Virus record (IMG/VR): IMGVR_UViG_3300027896_005002
Span: 62,001 to 126,000 of that record
DNA length: 64,000 nucleotides
Strand: one strand, 5' to 3'
Positions 1,852-31,821 of this stretch are shown here, one piece after another. Numbering within the stretch: the first letter of the stretch is position 1; the number at the start of each line of letters is the position of its first letter. The position numbers were made by a program, and so were the translations under genes. Below the pieces are notes generated by a model. The model was not told where the DNA came from and ran no database searches. It was given only the letters and a program-made list of their open reading frames with translations.

Positions 1852-2757
1852 ATGAAAAACACTGGCTTTTCTGAAATAACTACTGAACGACTTTACTATA
1901 ATAGTCAAGATCCTTGGTACATGGAAGTCGCTATTACTGGTCGTTGCAATTTTTCATGTAAATATTGCAATAGATTCAATAATGATATTGATCTTGCAAA
2001 ACTTACCTCTTTTATTCAAAATAATCAATTCAGACATATTCAAATAACAGGCGGTGAACCTACAGTTCACAATCAATTCTTTGAAATAATGAATTTATGT
2101 AGAAGTAAAACCAAAAAACTTGGTCTTTCTACAAATGGTACTTTTGGTATTGATAATTATTTGAAAAGTCAAGCAGATATGTTTTCAGTGTCATTAGATG
2201 ATTATGACATGGACATTTTGAAGAATAGAGGATATAATAGTCCAGAAAAAATAGTTGATACTATAAAACAACTCGTTAAATATAAATATGTTAATATTGG
2301 TCTTGTAATTGATTCATTAAATATTGATAGAATAGAATCAATAGTAGATTTTATTTTGTCACTCGGTGTTAATGATATAAAATTATCAACATCAACAAAA
2401 GACCAATTAATACCTAAGTTCAAAAAAGATTATATTAAATATCCTATTTTAAATTATCGTGTACAAAACTTTAAAGATGGTAAACAAATGCGAGGAAATG
2501 CTTGCAAAAAATGTTATATTGCAAGCAGTGATGTTACTATAGTTGGTGACAGTCATTATCCTTGTTTGACTTATTTTAGAGAAAAAGGTACAGCAATTGG
2601 TAAAGTAAATAATGATTTGATGAAAGATCGTATTGTTTGGATGAATGAACATGATTGTAGTAAAGATGATATATGTCAAAAATATTGTATGGATTTTAAA
2701 TGTGAATTCAATAGAGCAAGAACGGAGATTGTATGTCAGTCAAACAAGTCATTGTAA
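1852..2757 (+). CDS. radical SAM protein
   Basis: CNFSCKYC (CxxxCxxC), ITGGEPT, C-terminal Cys cluster. Confidence 0.88.
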   Translation: MKNTGFSEITTERLYYNSQDPWYMEVAITGRCNFSCKYCNRFNNDIDLAKLTSFIQNNQFRHIQITGGEPTVHNQFFEIMNLCRSKTKKLGLSTNGTFGIDNYLKSQADMFSVSLDDYDMDILKNRGYNSPEKIVDTIKQLVKYKYVNIGLVIDSLNIDRIESIVDFILSLGVNDIKLSTSTKDQLIPKFKKDYIKYPILNYRVQNFKDGKQMRGNACKKCYIASSDVTIVGDSHYPCLTYFREKGTAIGKVNNDLMKDRIVWMNEHDCSKDDICQKYCMDFKCEFNRARTEIVCQSNKSL

Positions 2758-3122
2758 TTCGTAAAGATTTGAATATGAGAAAAGGTAAATGCATCGTGCA
2801 AGGTGCGCACGCTTCAATGAAAATATTTTTTGATCGGTGGCATAAAGTCGATAATCAAAATACTTTTATAACAGATTTCTTACCTGATACTATGGTTCAA
2901 TGGATTGAGGGATTATTTACCAAAATTTGTGTGAGTGTAAATTCTGAAGCCGAATTACTTGAAATTTATGAAAAAGCAAAAGAAGCTAATATACCAGTAG
3001 CTTTGATTGAAGATGCAGGTTTGACCGAATTTAAGGGAATATTAACTAAGACTTGTATTGCTCTTGGACCCGACGAATCTGAAAAGATTGATAAATTGAC
3101 TGGTCACTTATCTTTGCTATGA
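2733..3122 (+). CDS. pth2: peptidyl-tRNA hydrolase type 2
   Basis: KQVIVIRKDLNMRKGK..QGAHAS, KICVSV, IEDAGLTE, TCIALGP. Confidence 0.92.
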   Translation: MSVKQVIVIRKDLNMRKGKCIVQGAHASMKIFFDRWHKVDNQNTFITDFLPDTMVQWIEGLFTKICVSVNSEAELLEIYEKAKEANIPVALIEDAGLTEFKGILTKTCIALGPDESEKIDKLTGHLSLL

Positions 3123-5637: not shown

Positions 5638-5717
5638 TGCCCGTGATTGGAATCGAACCAACATTTTCAGCTTCCTTTACGATTATCTGTTTAGGAAACA
5701 GACTCGGCTACACGGGC
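5638..5717 (-). tRNA. non-canonical tRNA-Arg(CCT), rearranged D region
   Basis: GCCCGTG/CACGGGC, 8-nt linker, TCTGT-TTCCTAA-ACAGA, 23-nt segment starting TAATCGTAA, T-arm GTTGG-TTCGATT-CCAAT. Confidence 0.75.
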
Positions 5718-6824: not shown

Positions 6825-7616
6825 ATGGGTACTTCACAAGGTAACTTCAAAAGAAAACTTACTGGATTTTATGATAATGAAGATCGAAAAAAACAATGGA
6901 GTCAAGCTAGAATTAATACAAACAAAAATTCGGTCATTCTTAATCATAAAAAAACAATTCAGCAATTAACAAAATTAAAAATTAATGTTCAATGGTTTGA
7001 ACTACAATTGCAACAACATCGTATTACCACAATTACTAAAAATTTAAAATTACTTGACATTAAACATCCAAAACTAGCACTTAAATATTTAAAATCTTTA
7101 TTAGAGCCAAAACGATTAAAAGAAATTGCAAAAGAAAAACGAACATCTAAAACATCTGTCACACTTAAAAATCGATTGAGAACTGATATCATACTGAAAA
7201 AGAAATATATTAAAAATCTAACAAAGAGAAATCATCATAAATATCGATCAAAAGGTGAATTACGTCTCAAACATTGGTTACAAAAAACTTATCCTTACTA
7301 TAATTGGAAAAGTATACATTTAACTTATAACAATTCAATTTATGAATTCGATATCTATTCAGAACAATATGACGATTTTTTCATTGAATATAACGGCGCT
7401 TGTCATTATAAACAAATTCATAGTTTAGAAAACTTTCAGCGTATTCAATGTCGAGATGAACAAAAAATACAAATAATGAAAGAACTTAATAAAGAATTTC
7501 TAATCATCAAGGACAGCATGTCCTTTGAAGAACAAACAAAAACTGTGACAAAATTCTTTAATTTAAGTAGTAATCTTCAAATTAAAAAATTGGAGGTGCG
7601 GGGACACTTTATCTGA
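6825..7616 (+). CDS. free-standing DUF559/Vsr-like (EDxHD-type) putative homing endonuclease
   Basis: Basic N-terminal half, then SKGE..YEFDIY..FIEYNGACHY..RDEQK. Confidence 0.72.
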   Translation: MGTSQGNFKRKLTGFYDNEDRKKQWSQARINTNKNSVILNHKKTIQQLTKLKINVQWFELQLQQHRITTITKNLKLLDIKHPKLALKYLKSLLEPKRLKEIAKEKRTSKTSVTLKNRLRTDIILKKKYIKNLTKRNHHKYRSKGELRLKHWLQKTYPYYNWKSIHLTYNNSIYEFDIYSEQYDDFFIEYNGACHYKQIHSLENFQRIQCRDEQKIQIMKELNKEFLIIKDSMSFEEQTKTVTKFFNLSSNLQIKKLEVRGHFI

Positions 7617-8231
7617 TGTTTTCACACCAGTGTGGACTATCTCTTCATCCAATTGGATGATGGGCGCTAATAAAGGATTATTGATTGAGTTTCTCACCTT
7701 TTAGTCTCTGCACTTTCCAACCTACAAAACACTCTTTCAGTTGGCTTAGCTCAGGATTGCCATATCATTTTACTGATTTAGGGTTCCCTGAATTCACCCA
7801 TTTTCTTCATCAATTGTTACCAATTGAGTCAACCATTTTGATTGAACCCCGGTCCAGAAAGTTTTCCATGACAATTACTACATGTTTATTCTATTCTATC
7901 TTGAATACTCACTCCGTAAATAGACAAGCGTTCAATGAGTACTTCGTAAGTGTCACTTCGGTCCCCTTCTCTTTTACGCGTTCGGTTGTCCTATCCGTAT
8001 ATAAACAGTTCAAGTTGCTACGGCTCCGCTTAAACTTCGACCGCCTTTATTTAGGCAGCCATTGCTGGTGCCTTTGCGCACATTGCAGCGAACTGCAATG
8101 CGAACTGAGCACCGAAAACTGAACCAATTTTGTTGGCAGTTGTTGTTTCATTGGATGATTTAAGAGGCCAACCAATGAGTCCTCTACATGCAATTATCAC
8201 TTCACCCAATCTGTCGAAACCTGACACCCCC
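7591..8231 (-). ncRNA. ssrA: tmRNA split by a T-loop intron (exon1 7841-8231, exon2 7591-7604)
   Basis: 5' GGGGGTGTCAGGTTTCGACAG; acceptor GGGGGTG/CACCTCC with G3-U70; resume context ACAACT-GCC; tag ANKIGSVFGAQFALQFAAMCAKAPAMAA (8051-8137); T-arm CGGGG-TTCAAT|T-CCCCG. Confidence 0.92.
7605..7840 (-). mobile_element. ORF-less group I intron (IC3-like, 236 nt)
   Basis: P1 TCAAT/GTTGA with U-G splice-site pair; core motifs GGCAATCCTGAGC, TGCAGAGACT, AGATAGTCC; terminal G at 7605. Confidence 0.9.
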
Positions 8232-10371: not shown

Positions 10372-10445
10372 TGGGACTGGTAGGAGTCGAACCTACGACC
10401 TCAACTTTGTAAGAGTTGCATTCTGTACCACTGAAATACAGTCCC
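10372..10445 (-). tRNA. tRNA-Val(TAC)
   Basis: GGGACTG/CAGTCCC, CAACT-CTTACAA-AGTTG. Confidence 0.92.
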
Positions 10446-11436
10446 GATTATTCAAATTTTTAAATTCTCTTACTAAATGTGACATTCTAGTTGTACTAGT
10501 TTGCCACTTATTTGCTAATCTAGAAATTAAACCATATTCATTTATATCTATAACCATAGCTAATTCAACAAAAATTTGTTTTTTCTTATTTAAACGTTGT
10601 GATTCACACGGTGACAATTTTTTAATATTATTAATTTTAAAAAATCGACTTAATTGTCTTTCAGATATAGCAAGCTTACTAGCAATTGTTTTATTATCTA
10701 ATCCTTCATCAACTAATTGAATTATTTCTTTTGCTTTATTAGAAACATCATTAATTACAATTTCTTTTTGTAATTTAATTTCATTTGTAACATTTAAGCT
10801 TTTTGTTTCTAAAAATTGTTTTAATTGATTAATAACTGTGTCAAAATTTTTACAAATAGCTCTAGCATGAATATTTATTACCTTCCAACCTCTTTCAATA
10901 ATATATTTTTCACGATCAACATAATAAGATTTTAGTTCATTATTAAAATAATGAGCATTGCCATTGACTTCTATATCAATTTTTAAATTTATTATTGCAA
11001 AATCCATTCTATAATTTCTGTCAAAATCATCTGGTGTATATTCTTGAATAATTTTTTCATCAACATTACATTCTAACCATTGTCTTAATATTTTCTCAGG
11101 ATATGTTTCTTTTTTCTTTCGCCAAGGATGATTTATTCTAGTTTTTAACCACTTTGATGTACTTTTTGACAATCGTTTTTTAGATTCTTCTGTATGTTGA
11201 ACTGGATATTTCTTTCTAGCTAATATCATTGCTTCACTTAAATTACGTCTATTTTTAATTGCAAGTTTTGTAATAAATCTTGGAAAACGACCTAAATGTC
11301 TTATTTCTCGCAATGATAAACCATTTTTATAATACAATTCTTTTACTTTATCGATGTCATCTTTAGTTACACATTTATGATTTGTAAATGCACCATTATT
11401 TGTAAAAGATCTATTACATTTTTGACATTTTATCAT
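10393..11436 (-). CDS. Zn-finger + DUF559-type putative homing endonuclease + HTH
   Basis: CQKC..H.C N-terminus; TYPE..YRMDF..DIEVNGNAHY..DRE; last codons run into tRNA-Val. Confidence 0.75.
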   Translation of the reverse strand: MIKCQKCNRSFTNNGAFTNHKCVTKDDIDKVKELYYKNGLSLREIRHLGRFPRFITKLAIKNRRNLSEAMILARKKYPVQHTEESKKRLSKSTSKWLKTRINHPWRKKKETYPEKILRQWLECNVDEKIIQEYTPDDFDRNYRMDFAIINLKIDIEVNGNAHYFNNELKSYYVDREKYIIERGWKVINIHARAICKNFDTVINQLKQFLETKSLNVTNEIKLQKEIVINDVSNKAKEIIQLVDEGLDNKTIASKLAISERQLSRFFKINNIKKLSPCESQRLNKKKQIFVELAMVIDINEYGLISRLANKWQTSTTRMSHLVREFKNLNNRDCISVVQNATLTKLRS

Positions 11437-14744: not shown

Positions 14745-14779
14745 AAAAAAAAGCCCCGTTGTTTGTGGCAACAGGGCTT
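14745..14779 (-). terminator. intrinsic terminator (3:4 hairpin of attenuator 1)
   Basis: AAGCCCTGTTG-CCACAAA-CAACGGGGCTT followed by U-tract. Confidence 0.88.
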
Positions 14780-14809
14780 TTTAAATTCTTATATATAAGC
14801 CCTGTTACA

Positions 14810-14890
14810 CTATGTGGCTCCTCTTGCTGTACTAATCGTAATACGCATAGATTTGACTACCACGAGTAACTTTATAAAATTATAATGCAT
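14810..14890 (-). CDS. leader peptide MHYNFIKLLVVVKSMRITISTARGAT
   Basis: Hand translation; stop TAG 3 nt before region 2. Confidence 0.7.
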   Translation of the reverse strand: MHYNFIKLLVVVKSMRITISTARGAT

Positions 14891-16088: not shown

Positions 16089-16544
16089 CTATTGTTGCTC
16101 AATTATTTCATCTACCCCTTCATCAAGACTTGGCTCTTCAAACTTTGCAGTCATCTTATCAATTACAGTTTGCCATTGTTCTCTTGATATATTTCTAGAA
16201 TCTAACATTCTATAACCTAAGGGATTTGGCTTTTTACAATATACAAATATTCTTTTATCAAAAGCTTTACAATGCGATAACCAAGCTGCACGATGCTGTT
16301 TATCAATATTAGTTTCATCAATTATCACATTAAATCCATTAACAATAGCCTTTTCAAGACATGTAATCGTCATTTCATGAACAAGAGGTTCTAAATTTTC
16401 AGTGTACAAATAATATCCATTTATCATTTGTCGAAATGAATCTCTATTAACAATTACTATATTTGGCTCTTCTTTAACTTTCATACGAGACCACGTACTC
16501 TTACCTGAGCCTGGAAGCCCAATCATTATATAAACTATTTTCAT
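16089..16544 (-). CDS. P-loop kinase (AAA_33 / T4 PNK kinase-like)
   Basis: GLPGSGKS, VNRDSFR, IIDETN, R..R. Confidence 0.85.
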   Translation of the reverse strand: MKIVYIMIGLPGSGKSTWSRMKVKEEPNIVIVNRDSFRQMINGYYLYTENLEPLVHEMTITCLEKAIVNGFNVIIDETNIDKQHRAAWLSHCKAFDKRIFVYCKKPNPLGYRMLDSRNISREQWQTVIDKMTAKFEEPSLDEGVDEIIEQQ

Positions 16545-19263: not shown

Positions 19264-19344
19264 TAGGAGAGGAGGGATTTGAACCCTCATCTGCCACATA
19301 CCGTTACGATTATCCGCCTTATAAGAGCGGCTCGGTACTCTCCT
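19264..19344 (-). tRNA. non-canonical tRNA-Ile(TAT), rearranged D region
   Basis: AGGAGAG/CTCTCCT, 7-nt linker TACCGAG, CCGCT-CTTATAA-GGCGG, ATAATCGTAACGGTA.., T-arm GAGGG-TTCAAAT-CCCTC. Confidence 0.75.
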
Positions 19345-21078: not shown

Positions 21079-21930
21079 TTATTTCTCAAATTTATAATAA
21101 AAAAACCAACCATTAGCGGATTTTCGTGTACCTTTTAATACTGTTATAATATTTGATGGATAAGTATTTAATTGCTTAGCTGCTTGTTTTTTGTTCGAAA
21201 ATTCTAATTTTTGACCATTTTTTACAGCAAAAAATATTTTTCTCTTAAGTTGTTCAACAAAATCATCATACATTTTTTTAGTTATATACTTAAAAGAAAA
21301 TATCCAATTATTTTTAGATTTAACTTTTCCATGCAAAATACAACTAATAAACCTTTGACTAACCTTAGTATAAATAGATGCTTCGTATTGTGTTTTAAAT
21401 TTCTTTAATTCATTAACATTTCTTGCATAAAAAGCTTTTCCACCATGACACTTACTATGCTTAATTCTTTCTTCAATTTTATTAAACCTTTTATTCTGAG
21501 ATTTACCCTGTTTTTTTCTGGCTTTATCTGACTTAAAATAATTTATTAAACCCAAACTTAAATTTTTTCGTGCTTCTAAATTAAACTTTCCATTACTTCC
21601 GCCTTCTTTTAAATTATATCCAAAAGTTTTATTAGTACTATTAAACTTTTTAATATATTCTTTTTCTTTTTTATCAAGTTCTAATTGTGTATTGCATTTA
21701 CATAATATGTCCCAAGTAAATTTATCAAAACCATATTTCATTAAAGCATTATGAAAATATGATTGATTTTTTGGCTTTTTTATTAAACTTTTCAAACAAA
21801 CTCGATGATGAGCTTTAATTCTACCTTGTAATGATCGCCATGTTTGACCAATATACACTTTATTTGTTAAAATATTTGTAGCTTTATAAATGATACTTTG
21901 TTCATACAAGTATTCATCTAAAATATTCAT
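21079..21930 (-). CDS. GIY-YIG homing endonuclease with NUMOD-type repeats
   Basis: IIYKATN..NKVYIGQT..R; FHNALMKYG; GYNLKEGG; EASI..V / QAAKQL repeats. Confidence 0.88.
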   Translation of the reverse strand: MNILDEYLYEQSIIYKATNILTNKVYIGQTWRSLQGRIKAHHRVCLKSLIKKPKNQSYFHNALMKYGFDKFTWDILCKCNTQLELDKKEKEYIKKFNSTNKTFGYNLKEGGSNGKFNLEARKNLSLGLINYFKSDKARKKQGKSQNKRFNKIEERIKHSKCHGGKAFYARNVNELKKFKTQYEASIYTKVSQRFISCILHGKVKSKNNWIFSFKYITKKMYDDFVEQLKRKIFFAVKNGQKLEFSNKKQAAKQLNTYPSNIITVLKGTRKSANGWFFYYKFEK

Positions 21931-22982
21931 TTACCTGTCTTATCTAAGTATACTGGATCTCGTTGCTTTAAAAATAACCGGCCAAAACCAACAATATATT
22001 TCTCTATCATCGGCTTTATCACTATGCCCTCTCTCAACCTATCGATTAATACACTCTTTCCATTTGAAGCAACTTGGACTGATCGGCCATCTAACCAATC
22101 TTTAAAGATCACATTACTCGCTATAATTGGTACAAATCTCTCTCTCAAACCAATCTTATCCAAGAGAACATCAATCTCTCCAAAATCAATAGCTTTACTA
22201 TTGACTTCAATATCAAAAATCTTTATCGTATGCTTTTTCAAATTATAATAATTACCCTGTACTTTAGGCCCGATTATCTCACCCCGAATCGTAATCGCAC
22301 AATTCGGAAAATAATTGACCTTCAAATTACTCACTGCGTCTATCAAACCATCATTACGAGCGACCTGCCAAAAAGTATGCTCCTCATGATCAGGCAAATT
22401 TATGATAGCATGACCGTGCGTGCACACGCTCATCTTATCATCTACATCAATGAAGACAGCAGCATTAGTGCCTTCTATTTTCTCAGATATGAACACCCTC
22501 TCATTCATCAATTGCTCAACGATATCAGGATGTCTATCGCAGCCTTCAATATCATAATTATAAACCATCTCCGGTCGCTGTACCAAATTACCAGTGCTCG
22601 TCATAACTTCTGGTGCTTCATACTTTGTCACACTCAAAGCAGCTGTTAGATCTACCGGTAAAACGTCCACCTTAAGATAAGCCTTAACACTAGACGCAGA
22701 TGTGACATATCCTTGAGAAATTTCATTTCTTAATTTACAAGTTTTAATTCTATTTTTATCTTTACCTGATAAAAAATTCTGAATATTTTGTTGTAATATA
22801 AATTCCTGAGGCAGTATAGAATCTATTGGAAAATAAACTACACTATCTCCAACTTTATATAAATCTTTTTGGACAACAAATTGATATGTCATCCCTTCAA
22901 CTTGACCAAGTTCCAATTTATCAGCATTTGGATGCGGATAAATTTTAGATATTTTTTTTACTTCCACAGCAAAAGTACTCAT
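21927..22982 (-). CDS. RNA ligase, DRB0094/Rnl2-type with N-terminal OB-like domain
   Basis: HPNADKLEL, YFPIDSILP, EKIEGTN (KxxG), GEIIG..QGN, FDI, REGIV. Confidence 0.9.
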   Translation of the reverse strand: MSTFAVEVKKISKIYPHPNADKLELGQVEGMTYQFVVQKDLYKVGDSVVYFPIDSILPQEFILQQNIQNFLSGKDKNRIKTCKLRNEISQGYVTSASSVKAYLKVDVLPVDLTAALSVTKYEAPEVMTSTGNLVQRPEMVYNYDIEGCDRHPDIVEQLMNERVFISEKIEGTNAAVFIDVDDKMSVCTHGHAIINLPDHEEHTFWQVARNDGLIDAVSNLKVNYFPNCAITIRGEIIGPKVQGNYYNLKKHTIKIFDIEVNSKAIDFGEIDVLLDKIGLRERFVPIIASNVIFKDWLDGRSVQVASNGKSVLIDRLREGIVIKPMIEKYIVGFGRLFLKQRDPVYLDKTGK

Positions 22983-23012: not shown

Positions 23013-24518
23013 TCATAGTTGTGTAACAAGTTGTTTAGAAATAATTTTTTTAATCATACGTCTAGTAATTTTATATTTTTTAATTAATACTCCAATCTTA
23101 AAACCATTTTGATAATCATTAATTATATCATTGATTCTGAATGAAACATTTCTATCACACCATCTCTTTTTAATAAAATATCCACTATTTTTTATACTAA
23201 TATTATTATCTAAAAACAATTGTTTAACCTTTTTATTCAACACATTATATTTTCTACAAATTTTACTTAATGAATTATTATTTTTATAATCATCAATTAT
23301 TTGTTTTGCAAGATCACTTGTTATTATAGTTTTTATTTTGTAAAATCGTTTTATAGTATACTTTGTATTGTACTTAATAAATCTTTTTACTTGTGTTTGT
23401 GATACATTCCATAATTTTGCAAGTATAGCAAATGTTCCACGTTTATTAATATCAACTTTTTCAAGATCATTTAATCTATTTTGACGTAATTCATTTCTTA
23501 TTTTTATAATTTTACTTATTTTTTCATTTTTTCTTTTAGTAATCTCTGCTAGATTATTAAGCGCTACCAACTGTTTATCAGTATATTGTGAAATTAAAAC
23601 ATCTCTTTTTTCAGATGATTTAAGAATAGATTTTATTTCTTGAAACTTATCTTTTGAATTATAACAAATTGCTCGCCAACAAATTCTAAATACCGTAATA
23701 TTATTTAATTTAAGCAATGCATCTTTCTTTTTATCAATTTCCTGACGTCGCTTATATCTATAATGTTGTTGACCGTCAATTTCAATAGCTAATGATAATT
23801 TAGGAAAGAAAAAATCTACTCTATAAACAGAAAAAGGAAATTCAGTATAAAAATCATCATTAAGTTTATATCCTTCATTAATTAAAAATTTAAAAAAAGT
23901 TTTCTCAGCATATGACTGATTGTCTTGTTTATACCAAGAATTAGCTCTATTTTCAGCATGCATTATTTTACATTTTTCAGACCACTTTTTTCTTGATTCA
24001 TCTGACCACTTAAAAGTATATTTTTTATGAGCTAATTTCGATGCATCTGCGACAGATCGTCTATAACATTTTAATGCAAAATGTATGAGACCTGTATCAA
24101 AACCTTGATTATGTAATTCACGCGATGATAATCCAGAATCATATAGATTACGAATTTTTATAACATCATTATCTTCATAACATTTATGTCGTTTATAATT
24201 ACCACTATTAAATGATCTATTACATTTTTTACAAATAATTTTTTTATCACTAAAACTATTTATTGCTTTTTTCCTATATATTTTAGTATGTGCAATTTTT
24301 AATGTATCACTAGCAGTTCTTTTCAAATCTTTTATACATCTATTTATTTGATTTCGTGTATAACCTATTTGAATTATATCTTTTATTAATAATCCAGAAT
24401 TATACAAATCTCTAATTTTCTGTCTATCGTTCTCAGATATCTTACAATATTTCTTATGTGAAAAAAAACTTCCAGGATTCGTAAAAAAATTACCGCAATT
24501 CTCGCAACATAATTTCAT
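23013..24518 (-). CDS. double Zn-finger + DUF559-type putative homing endonuclease + HTHs
   Basis: Two CxxC..H..C/LY.SG repeats; SYAE..YRVDF..AIEIDGQQHY..D; paralog of 10393-11436. Confidence 0.78.
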   Translation of the reverse strand: MKLCCENCGNFFTNPGSFFSHKKYCKISENDRQKIRDLYNSGLLIKDIIQIGYTRNQINRCIKDLKRTASDTLKIAHTKIYRKKAINSFSDKKIICKKCNRSFNSGNYKRHKCYEDNDVIKIRNLYDSGLSSRELHNQGFDTGLIHFALKCYRRSVADASKLAHKKYTFKWSDESRKKWSEKCKIMHAENRANSWYKQDNQSYAEKTFFKFLINEGYKLNDDFYTEFPFSVYRVDFFFPKLSLAIEIDGQQHYRYKRRQEIDKKKDALLKLNNITVFRICWRAICYNSKDKFQEIKSILKSSEKRDVLISQYTDKQLVALNNLAEITKRKNEKISKIIKIRNELRQNRLNDLEKVDINKRGTFAILAKLWNVSQTQVKRFIKYNTKYTIKRFYKIKTIITSDLAKQIIDDYKNNNSLSKICRKYNVLNKKVKQLFLDNNISIKNSGYFIKKRWCDRNVSFRINDIINDYQNGFKIGVLIKKYKITRRMIKKIISKQLVTQL

Positions 24519-24701: not shown

Positions 24702-24789
24702 TGGGCCGGGAAGGATTTGAACCTCCAGTGTTTAGCACATATGGCACTTGATCTACAGTCAAGCGGTTTCACCATTCACCCACCGACCC
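24702..24789 (-). tRNA. tRNA-Tyr(GTA)
   Basis: GGGTCGG/CCGGCCC, CTTGA-CTGTAGA-TCAAG, long variable region. Confidence 0.9.
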
Positions 24790-24794
24790 TTAAT

Positions 24795-25055
24795 TCATTT
24801 TCTTATTACTTTCCATACCGGTGTTGGCTCATAACTTACCAGCTCACCATTACGCCAATAATATCGTGGATGAGGATCATAGAGAAATTTAAAATCGCAA
24901 ATGTTATAAGGATCATTGAATTTTCGATAAGCATTCCCATTCGGGACATCTTCAATTCTCCGAATAACTTTCGAATAATTTTTCTTCCAAAATTTTCTTT
25001 TACCAGCATTCTTATAACCATCTGTGAACCACGGCGCGCGATACGATCTGGACAT
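24795..25055 (-). CDS. small basic hypothetical protein
   Basis: MSRSYR..YRKFNDPYNICDFKF; SD AGGAG. Confidence 0.55.
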   Translation of the reverse strand: MSRSYRAPWFTDGYKNAGKRKFWKKNYSKVIRRIEDVPNGNAYRKFNDPYNICDFKFLYDPHPRYYWRNGELVSYEPTPVWKVIRK

Positions 25056-25117
25056 ACATTGCTCCTTGTAAAGGTGTTACAACATATGTTCCTCCTTTGT
25101 TAATTATTTAATGTCTT

Positions 25118-25194
25118 TGGTGTGGGTGGTCGGACTTGAACCGGCAGCGTCTGACTTGGAAGGACAGCATTCTAGCCAATTGAATTACACCCAC
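25118..25194 (-). tRNA. tRNA-Gly(TCC)
   Basis: GTGGGTG/CACCCAC, loop CTTCCAA, CCA; A73 rather than the usual bacterial U73. Confidence 0.85.
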
Positions 25195-25215
25195 GAATTT
25201 ATCATCAATTTATAT

Positions 25216-25290
25216 TGGTAGCCCATAGCGGAATCGGACCGCTGAATCCTCATAGAAAGTGAGGTGTCTTAACCACTTGACGAATGGGCC
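25216..25290 (-). tRNA. tRNA-Glu(TTC)
   Basis: GGCCCAT/ATGGGCT, CCTCA-CTTTCTA-TGAGG, T-loop TCCGATT, CCA. Confidence 0.88.
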
Positions 25291-25298
25291 GTGATAAT

Positions 25299-25377
25299 CA
25301 GGAGCGAAGAGACTCGAACTCTCATTTTCAACCAAATTACAAGTATATGGTTTTGGAGACCACACTGTTACGCTCCT
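25299..25377 (-). tRNA. non-canonical tRNA-Trp(CCA), rearranged D region
   Basis: AGGAGCG/CGCTCCT-G, 7-nt linker, GTGGT-CTCCAAA-ACCAT, ATACTTGTAATTTGGTTGAAAAT, T-arm GAGAG-TTCGAGT-CTCTT. Confidence 0.72.
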
Positions 25378-25385
25378 ACAAAATT

Positions 25386-25459
25386 TAGCGGGCAAGAGAA
25401 TCGAACTCTCATTCGTGTGGTTATGAGCCACATCGAGGCACCACGCCTCGCCACCCGCG
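25386..25459 (-). tRNA. initiator-like tRNA-Met(CAT) with 6-bp D-stem
   Basis: CGCGGG start with unpaired 1-72, CGAGGC-GTGGT-GCCTCG, TGTGG-CTCATAA-CCACA. Confidence 0.8.
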
Positions 25460-25465
25460 ATAAAT

Positions 25466-25675
25466 TTATATAGTAGATCCATATGCTAAAACATCCATAA
25501 ATTTCTGTCTGACTGCAATTTCAAAATCAGTCATTAACTGCTTATTTTCGTAAAAACATATTCGCAAACATGTTTTGATATTTTCTGGACAATCTGAAAA
25601 ATATTCATGCACAAATTCATCAACTGTCAACGGTTCTGATATTTTATCAATTATTGTTTCAACAAATTTGTCCAT
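25466..25675 (-). CDS. hypothetical protein
   Basis: 69-aa ORF with SD AGGAG. Confidence 0.5.
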   Translation of the reverse strand: MDKFVETIIDKISEPLTVDEFVHEYFSDCPENIKTCLRICFYENKQLMTDFEIAVRQKFMDVLAYGSTI

Positions 25676-25762
25676 TTAAAACAACTCCTAACTTCCTGAA
25701 AATAAACTTGAATCATAATACTCTTAACTCTTCTACAATAATCTAATTGACTATTTAACTAT

Positions 25763-26188
25763 ATGAAACATTCTCCTCATCATTTACTACAAGAAAGACT
25801 TTACAAAAGACCTTGGCGTCTACTAATCGGCTGCATCATGCTAAACCTCACCACAAGATCTCAAGTTGATAAAGTAATCTACAAGTTCTTCAAATTATGT
25901 CCTAAACCACAAGATGCCATCAAAATTCCTAAAAGACGATTAATAAGACTATTAAAACCTCTCGGCCTCGTCAATAGACGAGTTAACACCATTAAAAACT
26001 TCTCAAAAGACTTTATCGAAAAAAGTTGGACATATCCAATAGAACTTTACGGTATTGGAAAATATGCCAATGATAGTTATTTGCTTTTCTGTGCAGATGT
26101 GTGGAAGAATGTCCGACCGACAGATAAAGCATTAAAACTTTATATTAAATGGCGGAGGAGACAGGAGTTGAACCTGCATGTCTGTTAA
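25763..26188 (+). CDS. HhH-GPD DNA glycosylase, MBD4-like
   Basis: PWRLLIGCIMLNLT, LKPLGL..RVNTIKNFS, YPIELYGIGKYANDSYLLFC..WKNVRPTDKAL. Confidence 0.88.
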   Translation: MKHSPHHLLQERLYKRPWRLLIGCIMLNLTTRSQVDKVIYKFFKLCPKPQDAIKIPKRRLIRLLKPLGLVNRRVNTIKNFSKDFIEKSWTYPIELYGIGKYANDSYLLFCADVWKNVRPTDKALKLYIKWRRRQELNLHVC

Positions 26189-26235
26189 GACGATGGTTTT
26201 CGAAACCATTGCTCTAGCCATTAAGCGACTCCTCC
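26150..26235 (-). tRNA. tRNA-Ser(CGA)
   Basis: GGAGGAG/CTCCTCC-G-CCA, loop TTCGAAA, long variable arm. Confidence 0.92.
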
Positions 26236-26242
26236 GAAAAAA

Positions 26243-26318
26243 TGGCGGAGCGTACGGGAATTGAACCCGTTTCCACGGTTTGACAAACCGTAATTCTAAG
26301 CCATTAAACTAACGCTCC
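26243..26318 (-). tRNA. tRNA-Asp(GTC)
   Basis: GGAGCGT/ACGCTCC-G-CCA, ACGGT-TTGTCAA-ACCGT. Confidence 0.92.
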
Positions 26319-26324
26319 ATATAA

Positions 26325-26411
26325 TGGCGGAGGGTGAGGGACTTGAACCCCCAGGTCCTTTCGGATCCGCTTTTCAAGAGCGACACGCTACCAATTACGC
26401 TCTAACCCTCC
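26325..26411 (-). tRNA. tRNA-Ser(TGA)
   Basis: GGAGGGT/ACCCTCC-G-CCA, loop CTTGAAA, variable arm TCC-GAAA-GGA. Confidence 0.9.
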
Positions 26412-26416
26412 ATAAT

Positions 26417-27436
26417 TTAATTATATTCTCTTATAAAACAATTCTCATTATAAAAATTCAACATATACTTTTTCATCCATTTACTTACTTTTTGATGTTT
26501 TATTCCTATCAATTCTGCTACTTTAGAAACCCAACCGAATTTAGAAAAACTAATTTTAGATTGTAAAATAGCATTAATTTTACTTTCAATATTTATTTGT
26601 TTTATTAATTTTTTATTTTCTCGTTTTAATTTTCTTTGATTGATTCGTTGATTTTGTTTTTTTACTTTCTGATTCATAATATTTTTAATGCCAACAGTAT
26701 ATTCATATTCAAACACTTTTCCATTTTTATTAAATTCCTTTATTTTAGTCAATAAAGATTTTATATCAAATCCTCGTCTATTTAAATATTTTTTAATTTC
26801 TTTTATTGTTGTTCTAGTAACTAATCTAATTATATAACCATTTGATCTAAATGCTTGTAATTGATTATTACACTCGTCTGTCAATTGTCCTTTTACTTCA
26901 TAAATTTTTCCATTTATTTCAAAATCATTTCTATATGTACGATCATTATATTGAACGGTTATATTCTCATAATTAAAATTAATATTCTTCTTTGCTAAAA
27001 ATAATGCAAAAATAAACTCGTATGAACTTCTTAAAAAAAACTTTTTATTATTATAATAAAAATAGCATCTTTTAAATTTATTTGATATTGGCGGCTGTCT
27101 TTTACCTTCTTTATATAATCTTTTTAATGTTTCAGAAAGCTTTAAATTCGCTGCTTTATTTTTCTTATCATCTTGTCGCCAATTTAATAATGGATTATCT
27201 GTATTAGAATTGTACGAGTTCCATCTATCCTTCATTCTTATTTTCATAGTTTCAGCCATCTTCATAATTGAAGGATGTGTTTCTTTTGTTAACCCTTTTA
27301 ACCACGGTTTACTATGATCAAATCTATCACCGGGTCTAACATCTATGCCCTGTTGTTTTAATCTACAATAATAAACATGACCACCAACTTGTGATCCTTT
27401 TTCAAATTGTCTTCCACAAATTTCACAACTGAACAT
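26417..27436 (-). CDS. Zn-finger + PD-(D/E)xK putative homing endonuclease
   Basis: Start moved to MFSCEICG (SD AGGAGG); LRSSYE..YE..YRNDF..YEVKG. Confidence 0.72.
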   Translation of the reverse strand: MFSCEICGRQFEKGSQVGGHVYYCRLKQQGIDVRPGDRFDHSKPWLKGLTKETHPSIMKMAETMKIRMKDRWNSYNSNTDNPLLNWRQDDKKNKAANLKLSETLKRLYKEGKRQPPISNKFKRCYFYYNNKKFFLRSSYEFIFALFLAKKNINFNYENITVQYNDRTYRNDFEINGKIYEVKGQLTDECNNQLQAFRSNGYIIRLVTRTTIKEIKKYLNRRGFDIKSLLTKIKEFNKNGKVFEYEYTVGIKNIMNQKVKKQNQRINQRKLKRENKKLIKQINIESKINAILQSKISFSKFGWVSKVAELIGIKHQKVSKWMKKYMLNFYNENCFIREYN

Positions 27437-27507
27437 AAAATCCTCCTTTTTAATAGGAAGATTTATAAACAGAATAGAAATTCGCATGTCTACCAAATAT
27501 AATAAAT

Positions 27508-27581
27508 TGCGCGCGATGAGATTCGAACTCATACCTGCTGATTTCTAAGACCAGTGCATCTACCAATTGTGCAACGCGCGC
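27508..27581 (-). tRNA. tRNA-Leu(TAG) with short variable loop
   Basis: GCGCGCG/CGCGCGC, CTGGT-CTTAGAA-ATCAG, 5-nt variable loop. Confidence 0.85.
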
Positions 27582-27592
27582 ATAAAATTAAA

Positions 27593-27667
27593 TGGGAATG
27601 ATAGGATTCGAACCTACAAACATCTAAATTTTGAATTTAGCGACTCTACCAATTGGTCTACATTCCC
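27593..27667 (-). tRNA. tRNA-Leu(CAA) with short variable loop
   Basis: GGGAATG/CATTCCC, CTAAA-TTCAAAA-TTTAG, 6-nt variable loop. Confidence 0.85.
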
Positions 27668-27702
27668 AAAAATTGTCTTTATTGAATGTTCTTAATAACT
27701 TC

Positions 27703-27769
27703 ATGTCGTAATTGGATTTTAACCAATGTCTTTAGACAAAATGTGCTGACTTATTGCACCATACGACAT
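27703..27769 (-). pseudogene. tRNA-like remnant with collapsed anticodon arm
   Basis: ATGTCGTA/TACGACAT, D-arm GTGC/GCAC, T-arm ATTGG-TTAAAAT-CCAAT, only ~15 nt between D and T arms. Confidence 0.55.
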
Positions 27770-27802
27770 TGCCGATAATTTCAAAGAACAACTTACTTAA
27801 TT

Positions 27803-27882
27803 TGGGGTGACGGAAGGGATTTGAACCCTCGATCTTCAGAGTCACGATCTGACGCCTTAGACCAGACTGGGCTACCGCCACC
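27803..27882 (-). tRNA. tRNA-His(GTG)
   Basis: G-1 pairing C73, GTGGCGG/CCGTCAC, loop TCGTGAC (C33), CCA. Confidence 0.9.
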
Positions 27883-27888
27883 ATAACT

Positions 27889-28254
27889 TTATGCTATTAC
27901 AAGTTTTCTTTCGGGCCATAATACTTTTTGTGTTTGTTTTTTCTGTTGGCCCCATTTAATTCTTAACTCAGATTCTATGTCAATAACATCGACTATTTTT
28001 CCGTCTTTTAGATATTTTCGAAGACCTCCAGTTCTTGGAGGAAGTTTTTGGATGTTTTCTATTAGTGTTAAGTCAACTTTTATTCTACTAATATCAGTTT
28101 TGATATCCAAACTGTCAATTATTTCACCATTTTTCAATTCAATAATTTCATCGTTTGGTTGCCAGAAATCCGTTTCCTCATTAGGATCATCTCTTCGTAA
28201 ATAAAACCCATTTGGCATCAATTTCAATTCATCGTATGAATATTGTTTGAACAT
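27889..28254 (-). CDS. hypothetical protein
   Basis: SD AAGGAGG; 121 aa between tRNAs. Confidence 0.6.
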   Translation of the reverse strand: MFKQYSYDELKLMPNGFYLRRDDPNEETDFWQPNDEIIELKNGEIIDSLDIKTDISRIKVDLTLIENIQKLPPRTGGLRKYLKDGKIVDVIDIESELRIKWGQQKKQTQKVLWPERKLVIA

Positions 28255-28273
28255 GATGTCCTCCTTATTTATA

Positions 28274-28346
28274 TGGGCTCGACTGGATTTGAACCAGTAA
28301 TCTTCCGCTTAAGAGGCGGTAGCTTTAACCATTAAGCTACGAACCC
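28274..28346 (-). tRNA. tRNA-Lys(CTT)
   Basis: GGGTTCG/CGAGCCC, CCGC-CTCTTAA-GCGG. Confidence 0.92.
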
Positions 28347-28362
28347 TTGTTTTTAAAATTTA

Positions 28363-28435
28363 TGGGTCCGACCGGATTCGGACCGATACAGATAGATTAA
28401 AAATCTACTATGCTACCAGTTAACATCACGGACCC
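28363..28435 (-). tRNA. tRNA-Lys(TTT)
   Basis: GGGTCCG/CGGACCC, GTAGA-TTTTTAA-TCTAT, T-loop TCCGAAT. Confidence 0.88.
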
Positions 28436-28512
28436 TAATTTGTCTCGTTTGCCAGATTTGTCACTGTCCATTAGGACCCGCCTTTGTTAAGTTTTCGTTA
28501 AGTATCTAAAAT

Positions 28513-28546
28513 AAAAAAAGCCCCGTAAGTTTCCTCCGGGGCTTTT
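28513..28546 (-). terminator. intrinsic terminator (3:4 hairpin of attenuator 2)
   Basis: AAAAGCCCCG-gaggaaactta-CGGGGCTTTTTTT. Confidence 0.88.
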
Positions 28547-28569
28547 AAAATTCGTATTTTTCTGTACGC

Positions 28570-28710
28570 TTATTTAAAAACCCCGTTGTGTCCTGTTTTA
28601 TCATAGCCTTCTTTTCCTTCGAGCAGCCATGATGATAAGGACAACCCTAGCACAGCATGCTTTATCGTATGCTTCAATGATATGCTTATGTAGAGTTGTG
28701 AGGTTTGCAT
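28570..28710 (-). CDS. leader peptide MQTSQLYISISLKHTIKHAVLGLSLSSWLLEGKEGYDKTGHNGVFK
   Basis: Hand translation; region 2 lies in the last codons, followed by TAA-GCGTACAG as in the E. coli thrL layout. Confidence 0.7.
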   Translation of the reverse strand: MQTSQLYISISLKHTIKHAVLGLSLSSWLLEGKEGYDKTGHNGVFK

Positions 28711-28792
28711 TACTTTCTCCGTTTTAATTAATATAATAAAAAATTATCTAAATGTACAATAATTCTTTATTATAAATAGATTAATCAGTCAA

Positions 28793-29116
28793 TTATCGTA
28801 GATTGGCCAATTTTGTTTTTTCTTCTTCCGAAAATGGACAGACACACTTTGACCATGATCTCAATGAACCTATTTTGTGTGAATCTCCAGAAAAAACCTT
28901 TTTATGTTCTCCACAAGTATGCCATGTATGACCGTTCTTGCAATGCTTCTCGCCAAGACGGCATCTACATGTCATATTAGTATGGATACCACAAATTGGG
29001 CAATTACTATGATCTTTTAGATAATTAGGATGAATAGATAATACTTCACCGTTACTAGCAATATCTTGATTTGCAAATTTTAAAAATTCAGATTGAATAG
29101 TAGCTAAATGTTTCAT
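28793..29116 (-). CDS. MKHL-tag family protein with Cys/His-rich domain
   Basis: MKHLATIQSEFLKFA; CPIC..CRC..C..GHTWHTC. Confidence 0.65.
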   Translation of the reverse strand: MKHLATIQSEFLKFANQDIASNGEVLSIHPNYLKDHSNCPICGIHTNMTCRCRLGEKHCKNGHTWHTCGEHKKVFSGDSHKIGSLRSWSKCVCPFSEEEKTKLANLR

Positions 29117-29355
29117 TAATTTTGTCCTTCAGTATATGTAAGACATAATTTGCCACGTTTTAAATCTTTAATGTCTGTTTGGAATAGATAGCATTTATCT
29201 TGATTTTGACTTAGATGTTTGCAATCAAGACCGCAGTCATTGTATCCTGGTAATTTCTCATCACCAACTATGACGTCTTCAACAGGAAAAAATCTACCTT
29301 GAGGTTTTAAAGCTATTTTTGAAAATTCAGTTTGAATAGTTGTTATGTGTTTCAT
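29116..29355 (-). CDS. MKHL-tag family protein, small Cys-rich
   Basis: MKHITTIQTEFSKIA. Confidence 0.6.
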   Translation of the reverse strand: MKHITTIQTEFSKIALKPQGRFFPVEDVIVGDEKLPGYNDCGLDCKHLSQNQDKCYLFQTDIKDLKRGKLCLTYTEGQN

Positions 29356-29363
29356 AATTGTAC

Positions 29364-30503
29364 TCATTTCTTATTTGGATCTTTATTTTTTAAATGAGAG
29401 TAGTTATTATATCCAATAGTATCGTTTAAAAATAAATCTGCAATTTCATCAAAATCTGATAATTTAAATCTATTATTAAGTACTTTTTCTACTATTTCAG
29501 ACCGTTTAAATGGATATTTATCTAAAAATGTTTGAAGTCTATCAACTTTTTCCTGTTCTTTATTTAATTCTTCAGGTGAACGCTGACCTTGTTCAATATA
29601 ATGTTTTAAATTATTTTTTCTCCAAGAACTCCAATCAGAAATTGTACTTTTAATATCTTGAAATAATGTCGCAATATTTTTAGCAAATTTAATTTTTTGT
29701 TTTTCCAAATGTTCTTTTAACCGTTGTTCTTTCCTTTGTTGTTTTTCTAATTTTTCTTGTTCATTTATTTTTTGCCTAACAACATTTCTGGGTACTTCAG
29801 GCGATGATAAATTAATAATATAACGGTAATGCCAAACTTGAATGTTATATCCACCGGCTGTAATTGCTTTAGTATTAAAATTCCATTGTCTGTCTTGGTC
29901 ATCAATTAAATTTGCTGATATTTCAAAACCATTTGAACCTTTGCTTATATTAATATTTTTAATATCAACAAATTCATCAGTAATATATTTTTGAAGAGCT
30001 CTTGATAATTTGCTTATATTATATTCATGTATCATTTCCTTTAAATTTGTATAAAAACGATTTTTAGATTCATTACTTAATTGTTTATCATTAAGTGATG
30101 GTCTAAACTTATAAGTATCTTTATTAACATATACTCTGCTTAAAAAATTAATAAGATCAGGATTATTTCTAGAATATTGTCTTACAAATTCATCAAATGA
30201 TATATTGTTTGTTTGTTTATTTTTAGCATCTTCAAATTGTTCGAGTTTATTATTGTAATAATTTACAGCTTGTTCTTGTAAATCATTAATTAATGGTTCA
30301 CATATAGAAAATACTTTCTTTTGAATATTTGTTAAATGATTTGTTTCGTTCTTTAATTCAGGAGTATTTTCAGATTTTGTTGTAATCTTTCTTTTCGATT
30401 TTGGGTGACGTAATAAATAACCTTTTTGATTTTCTAAAGACAAGTCTTCCCATTTGATTGCTTTTTTTAAAAATTCAGTTTGTATAATTGCTAAATGTTT
30501 CAT
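29364..30503 (-). CDS. MKHL-tag family protein
   Basis: MKHLAIIQTEFLKKA-IKWEDLSLENQKGYLLRHPKSK; internal AITAGGYNIQVWHYRY motif. Confidence 0.7.
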   Translation of the reverse strand: MKHLAIIQTEFLKKAIKWEDLSLENQKGYLLRHPKSKRKITTKSENTPELKNETNHLTNIQKKVFSICEPLINDLQEQAVNYYNNKLEQFEDAKNKQTNNISFDEFVRQYSRNNPDLINFLSRVYVNKDTYKFRPSLNDKQLSNESKNRFYTNLKEMIHEYNISKLSRALQKYITDEFVDIKNINISKGSNGFEISANLIDDQDRQWNFNTKAITAGGYNIQVWHYRYIINLSSPEVPRNVVRQKINEQEKLEKQQRKEQRLKEHLEKQKIKFAKNIATLFQDIKSTISDWSSWRKNNLKHYIEQGQRSPEELNKEQEKVDRLQTFLDKYPFKRSEIVEKVLNNRFKLSDFDEIADLFLNDTIGYNNYSHLKNKDPNKK

Positions 30504-31018
30504 TATTTAAAATTTTCCCATGATTCTTTTAATCCATGAAGTATTGGATGAAAATGATTTTTTAGCATTTCAGAGTAAGCTGAGTCTTTTGTCCATTTGT
30601 CATGAATTACTCGATATCGACCTATAATTAGACCTGTTCGGTCTTGGCCATGAGTACAATGGACAAGGATTCCTACACCAGATTCTATAATTTGTTCAGC
30701 TGTGTCTAACTTTTTTGTATCTGGACGGACAAAAGATTTTGCTATATTATCAAATAGATTTTTGTCGCCTTCAGGTTGAATGCTTAATGTATGTATTTTC
30801 ATGCCGATAGATGAAGCAATACTGTCACTACCTTCAGTTGTAAAGTTGAGTTTTACAATTTGTGTTATTCCAAGACTTTTTAGGTATTGCCATTGATCAA
30901 TTGCAGTTGGTTGACCTGATCTCCAAACATTAGTATCAACTTTGACAAGATTGGGAATTCCATGCGTATATACTGTTGGCGAACAAGAAAATAGTAATAG
31001 TAGTATTAGATATTTCAT
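30503..31018 (-). CDS. lipoprotein tyrosine/dual-specificity phosphatase
   Basis: Lipobox-like LLLFSC; NVWRSGQP; HCTHGQDRTG (CX5R). Confidence 0.85.
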   Translation of the reverse strand: MKYLILLLLFSCSPTVYTHGIPNLVKVDTNVWRSGQPTAIDQWQYLKSLGITQIVKLNFTTEGSDSIASSIGMKIHTLSIQPEGDKNLFDNIAKSFVRPDTKKLDTAEQIIESGVGILVHCTHGQDRTGLIIGRYRVIHDKWTKDSAYSEMLKNHFHPILHGLKESWENFK

Positions 31019-31821
31019 AATTGTCCTTGCCATTTTGCAGCTTTGTCTAAAAGATCGCCAATTGTTTTAGCTATGAGTCTTGGTGATTTATTATTTTTGT
31101 ATTCAGTCCAAGCTTCGGCTACAGTTTCAGTTTTGCTTTCTGTAGCATATTCACTTAAGTTTTTAAGAACATCATTATGTTGTAAAGTAGTTAGATATTG
31201 ATCAATTTGTTTTTTGAATGGATTTTTGCCGTAAAGATTTTCATATAGTCCATGAGCAATTTCATGATCTATTATAGCTTTTACTGACTCGCAGCCAACA
31301 GGACTATAACCTTCAGCAACATCTTGTTTTATATCATCTAGCATTTGGTTATAATTCTTTTTGCTGAACCAATCAGAGTTAAGTACTATTTTTCTTTTAT
31401 AGGGTGCATAGTCAGCAAATGTATCTTCATCAAATTTTTCCCCGATAAGATCTGTTTGAACACCTTTGACCATTGTTTGGCCGTATTTACCGTAGGGTAA
31501 TAGAGAGTCATTAATAGAATCATAAACTTGTTTGATTGCTTCATCTGGAACATTTGCTAAAGATCGAGCATCCTTTTGATTGGGACTGATTTGTTTTATT
31601 ATTTTATCTCTATTAAAAGTTTCTCGTTTAGTCTCTAATTGATCTTTTAATATTTCAGTTTTTTCAGGAGTTGTTTCTGTTTTAATCTCTGACTGAGCTG
31701 TTAATTTTCTTTTTGATTTTGGATGTCGTTGAAGATAACCTTTTTGTTCATCTAAAGATAGCTCTTCCCATTTACGAGCTTCTTTTAAGAATTCAATCTG
31801 TATAGTAGCTAAATGTTTCAT
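31015..31821 (-). CDS. MKHL-tag family protein with zincin-like HExxH domain
   Basis: MKHLATIQIEFLKEA-RKWEEL..HPKSK; IDHEIAHG..SEYA..ETVAEA. Confidence 0.75.
   Translation of the reverse strand: MKHLATIQIEFLKEARKWEELSLDEQKGYLQRHPKSKRKLTAQSEIKTETTPEKTEILKDQLETKRETFNRDKIIKQISPNQKDARSLANVPDEAIKQVYDSINDSLLPYGKYGQTMVKGVQTDLIGEKFDEDTFADYAPYKRKIVLNSDWFSKKNYNQMLDDIKQDVAEGYSPVGCESVKAIIDHEIAHGLYENLYGKNPFKKQIDQYLTTLQHNDVLKNLSEYATESKTETVAEAWTEYKNNKSPRLIAKTIGDLLDKAAKWQGQL

Follow-up and report, generated by a model that had tools for sequence, protein, structure and literature searches.

Leader-peptide transcription attenuators of the enterobacterial amino-acid operons (trpL, hisL, thrL, leuL, ilvL/ivbL and pheL) place a short translated ORF with control codons just upstream of a pair of mutually exclusive hairpins, the 3' one of which is an intrinsic terminator, and multi-amino-acid sensing appears to have precedents among them, with thrL responding to Thr and Ile and ilvL to Leu, Val and Ile. 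Related logic is found in the T-box riboswitches of Firmicutes, which bind uncharged tRNA directly through a specifier codon and the T-box sequence and choose between terminator and antiterminator without translation, and in the translation-sensing attenuators of resistance genes such as B. subtilis vmlR and yxjB (PMC9226507, PMC6851288), where antibiotic-induced ribosome stalling on a short leader ORF switches an antiterminator/terminator pair and RNA polymerase pausing hairpins synchronise the two machines. Why phages carry tRNA genes, and when they use them, is in turn a long-running question, with codon-usage compensation, host tRNA turnover and escape from tRNA-cleaving defences among the proposed reasons. 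Here we analyse a 64,000-nucleotide stretch of DNA (the window, positions 62001-126000 of the 416-kb, about 30% G+C IMG/VR contig IMGVR_UViG_3300027896_005002), in which a short leader ORF and a predicted terminator/antiterminator switch precede an array of phage tRNA genes and the codons of the leader match the tRNAs behind it.

Anatomy of attenuator 2

All features of the element lie on the minus strand, between 28759 and 28513. A promoter-like pair of hexamers, TTGTAC (28759-28754) and TATATT (28735-28730), is separated by an 18-nt spacer and gives only a 9/12 match to the sigma-70 consensus; the promoter is not established. It is followed by a GGAG Shine-Dalgarno (SD) sequence at 28720-28717, 6 nt before the ATG of a 46-codon ORF (28710..28570; MQTSQLYISISLKHTIKHAVLGLSLSSWLLEGKEGYDKTGHNGVFK), for which no PHROG family matches. 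The ORF ends in a G-run/U-run segment, region 2 (28585-28573), directly abutted by the TAA stop codon at 28572-28570. After a 23-nt loop, region 3 (28549-28537) can pair either with region 2, in a 13-bp antiterminator that alone folds at -21.3 kcal/mol, or with region 4, in the G+C stem of an intrinsic terminator (28546..28513; stem 28542..28520 followed by a seven-T tract to 28513) that alone folds at -18.5 kcal/mol. The terminator is one of only about four strong ones in the 64 kb. The upstream complement of its 5' arm beats 997 of 1000 dinucleotide shuffles, whereas two ordinary gene-end terminators in the window (48809 and 39483) have no such partner, and the 231-nt region as a whole folds with z = -6.25.

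Two further hairpins lie within the ORF, P1 at 28699..28641 (codons ~4-23; -15.7 kcal/mol) and P2 at 28643..28589 (core UCAUGGCU/GGCUAUGA; -18.2 kcal/mol), the latter overlying the sensor codons described below; both are real but neither competes with the 2:3 pairing. The original prediction had also proposed a 1:2 helix, and this is not supported: the best upstream partner of region 2 is 7 bp at -8.4 kcal/mol, which is chance level. The prediction further noted that the spacer after the stop mirrors that of E. coli thrL; the 8-mer GCGTACAG is indeed shared, but we regard the identity as coincidence.

Downstream, tRNA-Lys(ttt) starts 85 nt after the terminator and heads an array (28435..24702) of Lys ttt, Lys ctt, His, Leu caa, Leu tag, Ser tga, Asp, Ser cga, Met, Trp-like, Glu, Gly and Tyr, interspersed with homing-endonuclease-like ORFs, with Leu taa further on. 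Rfam adds three tRNA-like genes that ARAGORN misses, with anticodon loops reading CCA (Trp, 25299-25377), UAU (Ile, 19264-19344) and CCU (Arg, 5638-5717), although the Trp and Ile genes are found only as Rfam tRNA hits lacking a D arm. No strong terminator lies between the array and 14777, and the unit may therefore run on through the RNA ligase gene (21927-22982), the Ile tat-like gene, Leu taa and the PNK-like kinase gene (16089-16544). A 121-aa protein encoded inside the array has no homologue among 5.8 billion proteins.

The compositional claims of the original prediction are reproduced, with 33 of 46 codons matching the array, or 36 of 46 when three ATA codons are counted. Codons 21-38 (28650..28597) are 18 in a row for Leu, Gly, Ser, Trp, Glu, Lys, Tyr and Asp, amino acids drawn only from the array provided that Trp is counted, and none of 14,203 45-residue windows of the phage's own proteins contains such a run. 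Over the whole leader, however, the match is statistically modest: 31/45 residues against a 50.5% background (p = 0.0096) and, at codon level, 30/45 codons readable by the array's anticodons against 45.9% (24.6 expected; p = 0.004). Taken alone this is suggestive rather than compelling, because the array covers about half of all residues. It is thus possible, though in our view unlikely, that the attenuator is translation-dependent but not codon-set specific, reporting overall translation capacity or transcription-translation coupling (for example the stage of infection, or host shut-off), and that the resemblance of the leader to its array largely follows from the array covering the commonest amino acids; the uninterrupted 18-codon run and the synonymous bias towards array-readable codons argue against this, as do the narrower sibling arrays described next.

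Sibling units, an unrelated phage and orthologous leaders

The element is not a one-off, as all three tRNA transcription units of this phage begin with the same device. Attenuator 1 (14890..14745, minus strand) has a 26-codon leader (14890..14810; MHYNFIKLLVVVKSMRITISTARGAT), a region 2 that follows 6 nt after the stop codon, a perfect 10-bp 2:3 pairing of AACAGGGCTT with AAGCCCTGTT and a terminator at 14777..14753, with tRNA-Met only about 27 nt away, followed by Thr, Ala, Ile and Val. A third attenuator lies just outside the window, upstream of a plus-strand array in the locus we call L003 (window coordinate = L003 − 8740): its leader is MLTLRQTQPQQPRQPRSNMLM, its stop codon is embedded in a 10-bp region 2 that pairs with the terminator's 5' arm, and it is followed by a DUF488-like gene and then tRNAs Pro, Gln, Pro, Gln, Arg and Arg. 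The matrix of three leaders against three arrays is enriched on the diagonal only (4.9x, p = 2e-6; 1.85x, p = 0.014; 1.36x, p = 0.0096), with all off-diagonal values below 1. The flanks of the island contain no further tRNAs, and a scan for a terminator, an antiterminator and a small ORF ending at region 2 finds just these three next to tRNAs in 91 kb of this phage, plus one artefact on a tRNA T-arm, compared with about 1.4 per 100 kb elsewhere.

An unrelated 735-kb phage, LR756501.1, whose RNA ligase is 28% identical to the one here and whose leaders have no SD, carries four more such units in the 141 kb read. Leader MNNILHINLLNSLCLLGIKLIG is followed by five tRNA-Leu; MKNMVRKYNDYCINDKLKMLIG by Ile, Cys, Ile, Asp, Asn×3, Ile, Tyr and Asp×2; MNFRIINMIQEQMQQIQNLIGGTISY by Met, Gln×3, Met×3, Ile(tat) and Glu×3; and MLQTSKHSKHFSSSSKWFTTFGVETDLLCVS by Trp, His×2, Phe, Lys, Ser, Lys, Trp and Lys×2. 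The recurring "LIG" in the first three leaders is the translation of region 2 (CTGATTGG), which pairs with the terminator arm CCAATCAG; the antiterminators beat the shuffles, and a shared promoter-like motif precedes all four units, whereas no shared promoter motif could be defined among the three leaders of the first phage. The 4x4 matrix again has its optimum on the diagonal (p = 7e-4, 0.045, 8e-5 and 4e-4), the true assignment is the best of all permutations in both genomes, and the Fisher-combined p over the seven leaders is 7e-15. It is important to note that the design is not universal: among neighbourhoods of RNA-ligase homologues in other phages, LR756508.1 and LR745208.1 have tRNA arrays but no leader/terminator device was seen upstream, LR745206.1 and LR756511.1 showed no tRNAs, and a count found no such device next to a tRNA in CcrPW or SCTP-2, which were not scanned separately. 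Its occurrence in two unrelated huge-phage lineages, one using SD sequences and one not, suggests either convergence or a wide, overlooked distribution.

Several searches led nowhere. A blastn search with the element and a tblastn search with a neighbouring protein against 50,697 phage records found nothing close, copies of the contig in ENA ERZ27247850 and JGI 3300003852 are 100% identical and give no variation, and metagenomic relatives found through the RNA ligase have no tRNA arrays in reach. Exact-pattern scans of IMG/VR with the phage's own tRNA-Lys and with the LR756501.1 terminator motif also returned nothing, although the former pattern is present in the window's own contig, which the scan apparently does not return. 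Homologues of the 379-aa protein encoded upstream (43-51% identity), on the other hand, led to three metagenomic contigs, here L027, L031 and L032, in each of which a homologous leader, of 40 (MQTQTYRTSNLKHVGHAVIGLSLVSWLKLEGYDKIRTGGV), 46 and 42 codons, respectively, precedes a Lys-first tRNA array.

In the resulting alignments the SD (GGAG in L031 and L032, AGGA in L027), the ATG and the first codons are conserved, and the TTGTAY-18-TATATT arrangement recurs in L031 and L032 but is not seen in L027. All five indel sites inside the ORF are 3 or 9 nt long, whereas indels outside it are 1, 2, 3 or 6 nt. The stop codon always lies at the 3' edge of region 2, the terminator is conserved, and the 2:3 pairing is kept with different sequences, namely UUUUUAAA/UUUUAAAA in the window, UUUGAG/CUCAAG in L031 and L032, and a G+C extension at the other end in L027, each of which beats the shuffles. 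RNAalifold further finds several pairs of P1 kept through changes on both sides, while the core of P2 is nearly invariant and its loop indels are multiples of 3; as the peptide core SWL..LEG..YDK, conserved in all orthologues, coincides with P2, codon, peptide and RNA constraints cannot be separated there. The L027 contig also features an attenuator-1-like unit, in which a 38-codon leader followed by Met, Ile, Ala, Ala, Arg and Thr matches at 18/37 against a 25% background (p = 0.002). Its attenuator-2-like leader, in contrast, matches a 12-amino-acid array at only 29/39 against 66% (p = 0.16), in line with the loss of power of composition tests for broad arrays.

Together, the frame-preserving indels and the conserved SD, ATG and stop position argue that the leader is translated, although translation itself was not observed, and that the element is not a translation-independent RNA switch in which P1, P2 and the 2:3/3:4 pairings bind a protein, a metabolite or a tRNA and the ORF is incidental. 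Such a switch would accord with the strong structure of the region, the covariation in P1, the invariance of P2 and a conserved, unexplained element in the spacer, but seven leaders of unrelated sequence share only the ORF-plus-switch logic and the codon match, and no T-box or other Rfam family reaches threshold; we consider this alternative improbable. We likewise find little to favour an ordinary small protein gene followed by its own terminator, with the array transcribed from a separate start and a fortuitous competing hairpin. The peptide core is indeed conserved, and the 85-nt spacer holds a conserved block (28487..28443) that reads as SD + ATG + Asp/Ser/Lys/Gly codons (ORF 28471..28397 runs into the tRNA) and could hold a second start of transcription. 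However, no PHROG family matches, the block, which has no conserved structure, occurs nowhere else in the window, so it is not a general promoter motif, and the antiterminator is better than 997-999 of 1000 shuffles at this site and its orthologues. Moreover, the same arrangement precedes units in which the first tRNA starts about 27-30 nt after the terminator (attenuator 1 and one LR756501.1 site), which leaves no room for a separate promoter.

A proposed demand-driven switch and its relation to known attenuators

To examine how a ribosome might act on the switch, we masked a 29-nt footprint at successive codons and refolded the transcript up to region 4. In attenuators 1, 2 and 3 and in the three orthologues, a ribosome on the last ~9 codons or the stop gives the terminator, whereas one held further upstream gives the antiterminator; in attenuator 2 the change occurs at codon ~38, with the sensor run ending 3 codons before region 2. 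This is a thermodynamic model only, and in it a stall at almost any codon from 2 to 37 gives the antiterminator, as would also be expected of a general translation sensor. Without a ribosome, attenuator 3 terminates by virtue of a 1:2-type helix, but the minimum-energy fold is the antiterminator in attenuator 2 and in L032 and the terminator in L027 and L031, leaving the default state unclear.

In light of these results, we propose that attenuator 2 is a ribosome-mediated transcription attenuator, where transcription starts just upstream and a ribosome loads on the 46-codon leader. A ribosome that runs quickly to the end of the leader covers region 2, so that region 3 pairs with region 4 and RNA polymerase terminates at the T-tract before tRNA-Lys; a ribosome that lags on the codons upstream of region 2, which are read by the very tRNAs encoded downstream, allows region 2 to pair with region 3 as soon as the latter is made, and the array is transcribed, probably together with the RNA-repair genes behind it. 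The new tRNAs would then speed decoding and close the array again, in a feedback loop that supplies tRNAs on demand. That stalling occurs and decides termination, and that P2 acts as a pause hairpin synchronising polymerase and ribosome, are inferences made without experimental or transcript data. The sensor moreover has mostly one to five codons per amino acid rather than the long homopolymeric runs of classical attenuators, and sensitivity to any single tRNA should therefore be low. We hold with good confidence that attenuator 2 is a translated leader with a terminator/antiterminator switch controlling the array, and with more moderate confidence that its codon content is tuned to that array rather than reporting translation in general, the latter being better supported for the family than for this unit; for the proposal overall our confidence is fairly high.

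The trigger suggested in the original prediction, namely host tRNAs that are uncharged or destroyed, remains inference but fits the surrounding genes for RNA ligase, PNK-like kinase, phosphatase (30503-31033), peptidyl-tRNA hydrolase 2 (2733-3122) and tmRNA. It is about as likely as not that some huge phages partition their tRNA genes into regulons by amino-acid set, each under a leader read by that regulon's own tRNAs, and continuously measure decoding capacity for each codon set, switching the matching tRNAs on when host tRNAs run short or are cut by anticodon nucleases and off again once supply is restored; in this phage the same switch would also control RNA ligase, kinase, phosphatase, tmRNA and peptidyl-tRNA hydrolase, and would be the first attenuator whose output is the sensed molecule itself, as well as a built-in sensor of tRNA-targeting host defence. 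A leader-peptide attenuator in front of each array would mean that the phage expresses its tRNAs not constitutively but on measured demand, separately for each set of codons, with read-through of a roughly 250-nt element reporting which decoding shortages are experienced during infection, and would offer compact, composable sensors of chosen tRNAs for synthetic biology.

The mechanism itself is known from the trp, his, thr and ilv attenuators, and the 3' module is laid out like that of thrL, with the stop codon at region 2 (inside it in thrL) followed by the loop and regions 3 and 4. In contrast to those operons, the regulated genes are tRNA genes, plus RNA repair genes, rather than biosynthetic enzymes, the product acts directly on the sensor, the element is phage-encoded, up to about 10 amino acids are sampled, mostly by single or few codons, no clear 1:2 anti-antiterminator exists in attenuator 2, and two extra conserved hairpins lie inside the ORF. 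There is no sequence homology to Rfam leader families: His_leader (RF00514) scores 26.1 bits against a threshold of 49 and PyrG_leader (RF02371) 33.7 against 65, with nothing else close and the hits seemingly driven by the terminator. The T-box riboswitches likewise measure the state of a specific tRNA and regulate translation-supply genes, but there is no T-box (RF00230) hit even at E ≤ 10 on the 800-nt region, or at gathering threshold on the window, and the evidence here points to a translated ORF. The vmlR- and yxjB-type attenuators share the stall-dependent switch, but their stall is caused by an antibiotic acting on the ribosome and not by availability of the tRNAs for a chosen codon set. 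In the literature searched, including the huge-phage paper PMC7162821, we found no description of leader-peptide attenuation of tRNA genes in phages or bacteria; what is new is the target, the closed loop, the multi-amino-acid leaders and the phage setting. Finally, the co-location of tRNA arrays with an RNA ligase, a PNK-like kinase and a phosphatase, and the position of tRNA-Lys genes first in the array, resemble the setting of phage tRNA genes that probably act as counter-defence against tRNA-cleaving systems, and of the apparent T4 Pnkp/Rnl1 repair of PrrC-cleaved tRNA-Lys; no demand-sensing transcriptional control of such tRNA genes was found in that literature.

Additional leader-peptide attenuators and the spacer ahead of tRNA-Lys

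A third attenuator is found on the plus strand of locus L003, the stretch of the same contig that extends to the left of the window, at L003:7109-7234 (contig ~60.4 kb, 1.5 kb left of the window start). It features a 21-codon leader rich in Gln, Pro and Arg whose stop codon lies inside region 2, as well as a 1:2-type helix and a terminator, and is followed by a DUF488-like gene and then by tRNAs Pro, Gln, Pro, Gln, Arg, Arg. It is the cleanest example in this phage. Attenuator 1 (window 14745-14890, minus strand) in turn has a 26-codon Val/Met/Ile/Thr/Ala-rich leader, and its terminator sits only ~27 nt before tRNA-Met, so that this tRNA can only be made by read-through. At attenuator 2, the spacer between the terminator and tRNA-Lys holds a block (window 28443-28487, minus strand) that is more conserved than the leader itself and reads as a strong SD and ATG followed by Asp/Ser/Lys/Gly codons, with the corresponding ORF (28471..28397) running into the tRNA gene. 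This block could be a second mini-leader, a processing signal or a start site.

Just upstream of attenuator 2, three tandem genes on the minus strand (window 28793-29116, 29116-29367 and 29364-30503), together with a fourth gene on the plus strand of L003 (L003:5621-6628), begin with the same N-terminal motif (M-K/N-H-L/I-x-x-I-Q-S/T-E-F). No Pfam or PHROG family matches them, but homologues of the 379-aa member mark the orthologous loci.

Unusual tRNA-like genes and a possible intron-interrupted tmRNA

Three tRNA-like genes, all on the minus strand, have no D arm, with only 4-6 nt in its place, but retain a normal anticodon arm with anticodons CCA (Trp, window 25299-25377), UAU (Ile, 19264-19344) and CCU (Arg, 5638-5717). 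They also have a 20-25-nt variable stretch sharing UAAUCGUAA-like sequence. The Trp one has an orthologue in the related contig L027 (L027:5425-5502), with compensatory changes in three stems, so it is a real gene. Downstream in the attenuator 1 unit (window 7613-8224, minus strand), Rfam finds a full-length tmRNA (7839-8224), not called by ARAGORN, that abuts or overlaps a complete group I intron (7613-7854), and the two together may represent an intron-interrupted tmRNA gene. In addition, a related phage fragment (L021:676, plus strand, contig Ga0315274_10007396) encodes a suppressor-type tRNA with anticodon UUA, which would read UAA.

Protein-coding content of the tRNA island

The tRNA island also encodes an RNA ligase with an OB-fold (window 21927-22982), a PNK-like P-loop kinase (16089-16544) and a tyrosine/dual-specificity phosphatase (30503-31033), as well as peptidyl-tRNA hydrolase 2 (2733-3122) and a radical SAM enzyme (1852-2757), which together form a tRNA-repair and ribosome-rescue kit. 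A second RNA ligase paralogue, 68% identical, lies at contig 130-151 kb (locus L023). Homing-endonuclease-like ORFs of the DUF559/Vsr-like and GIY-YIG types (window 26417-27532, 23013-24518, 21079-21930 and 10393-11436, minus strand) are interspersed between the tRNA genes, and an intein-containing 636-aa protein (L013:6590-8500) lies left of the island.

The attenuators of phage LR756501.1

In LR756501.1 (record 161543-252499, loci L005 and L006), the same region that carries the attenuators has several tRNAs with odd anticodon loops, which ARAGORN labels '???'. All four attenuators of that phage are preceded by a shared motif, GAAAAAANNGACNTTTTT…AATATATA, which is probably a dedicated promoter.
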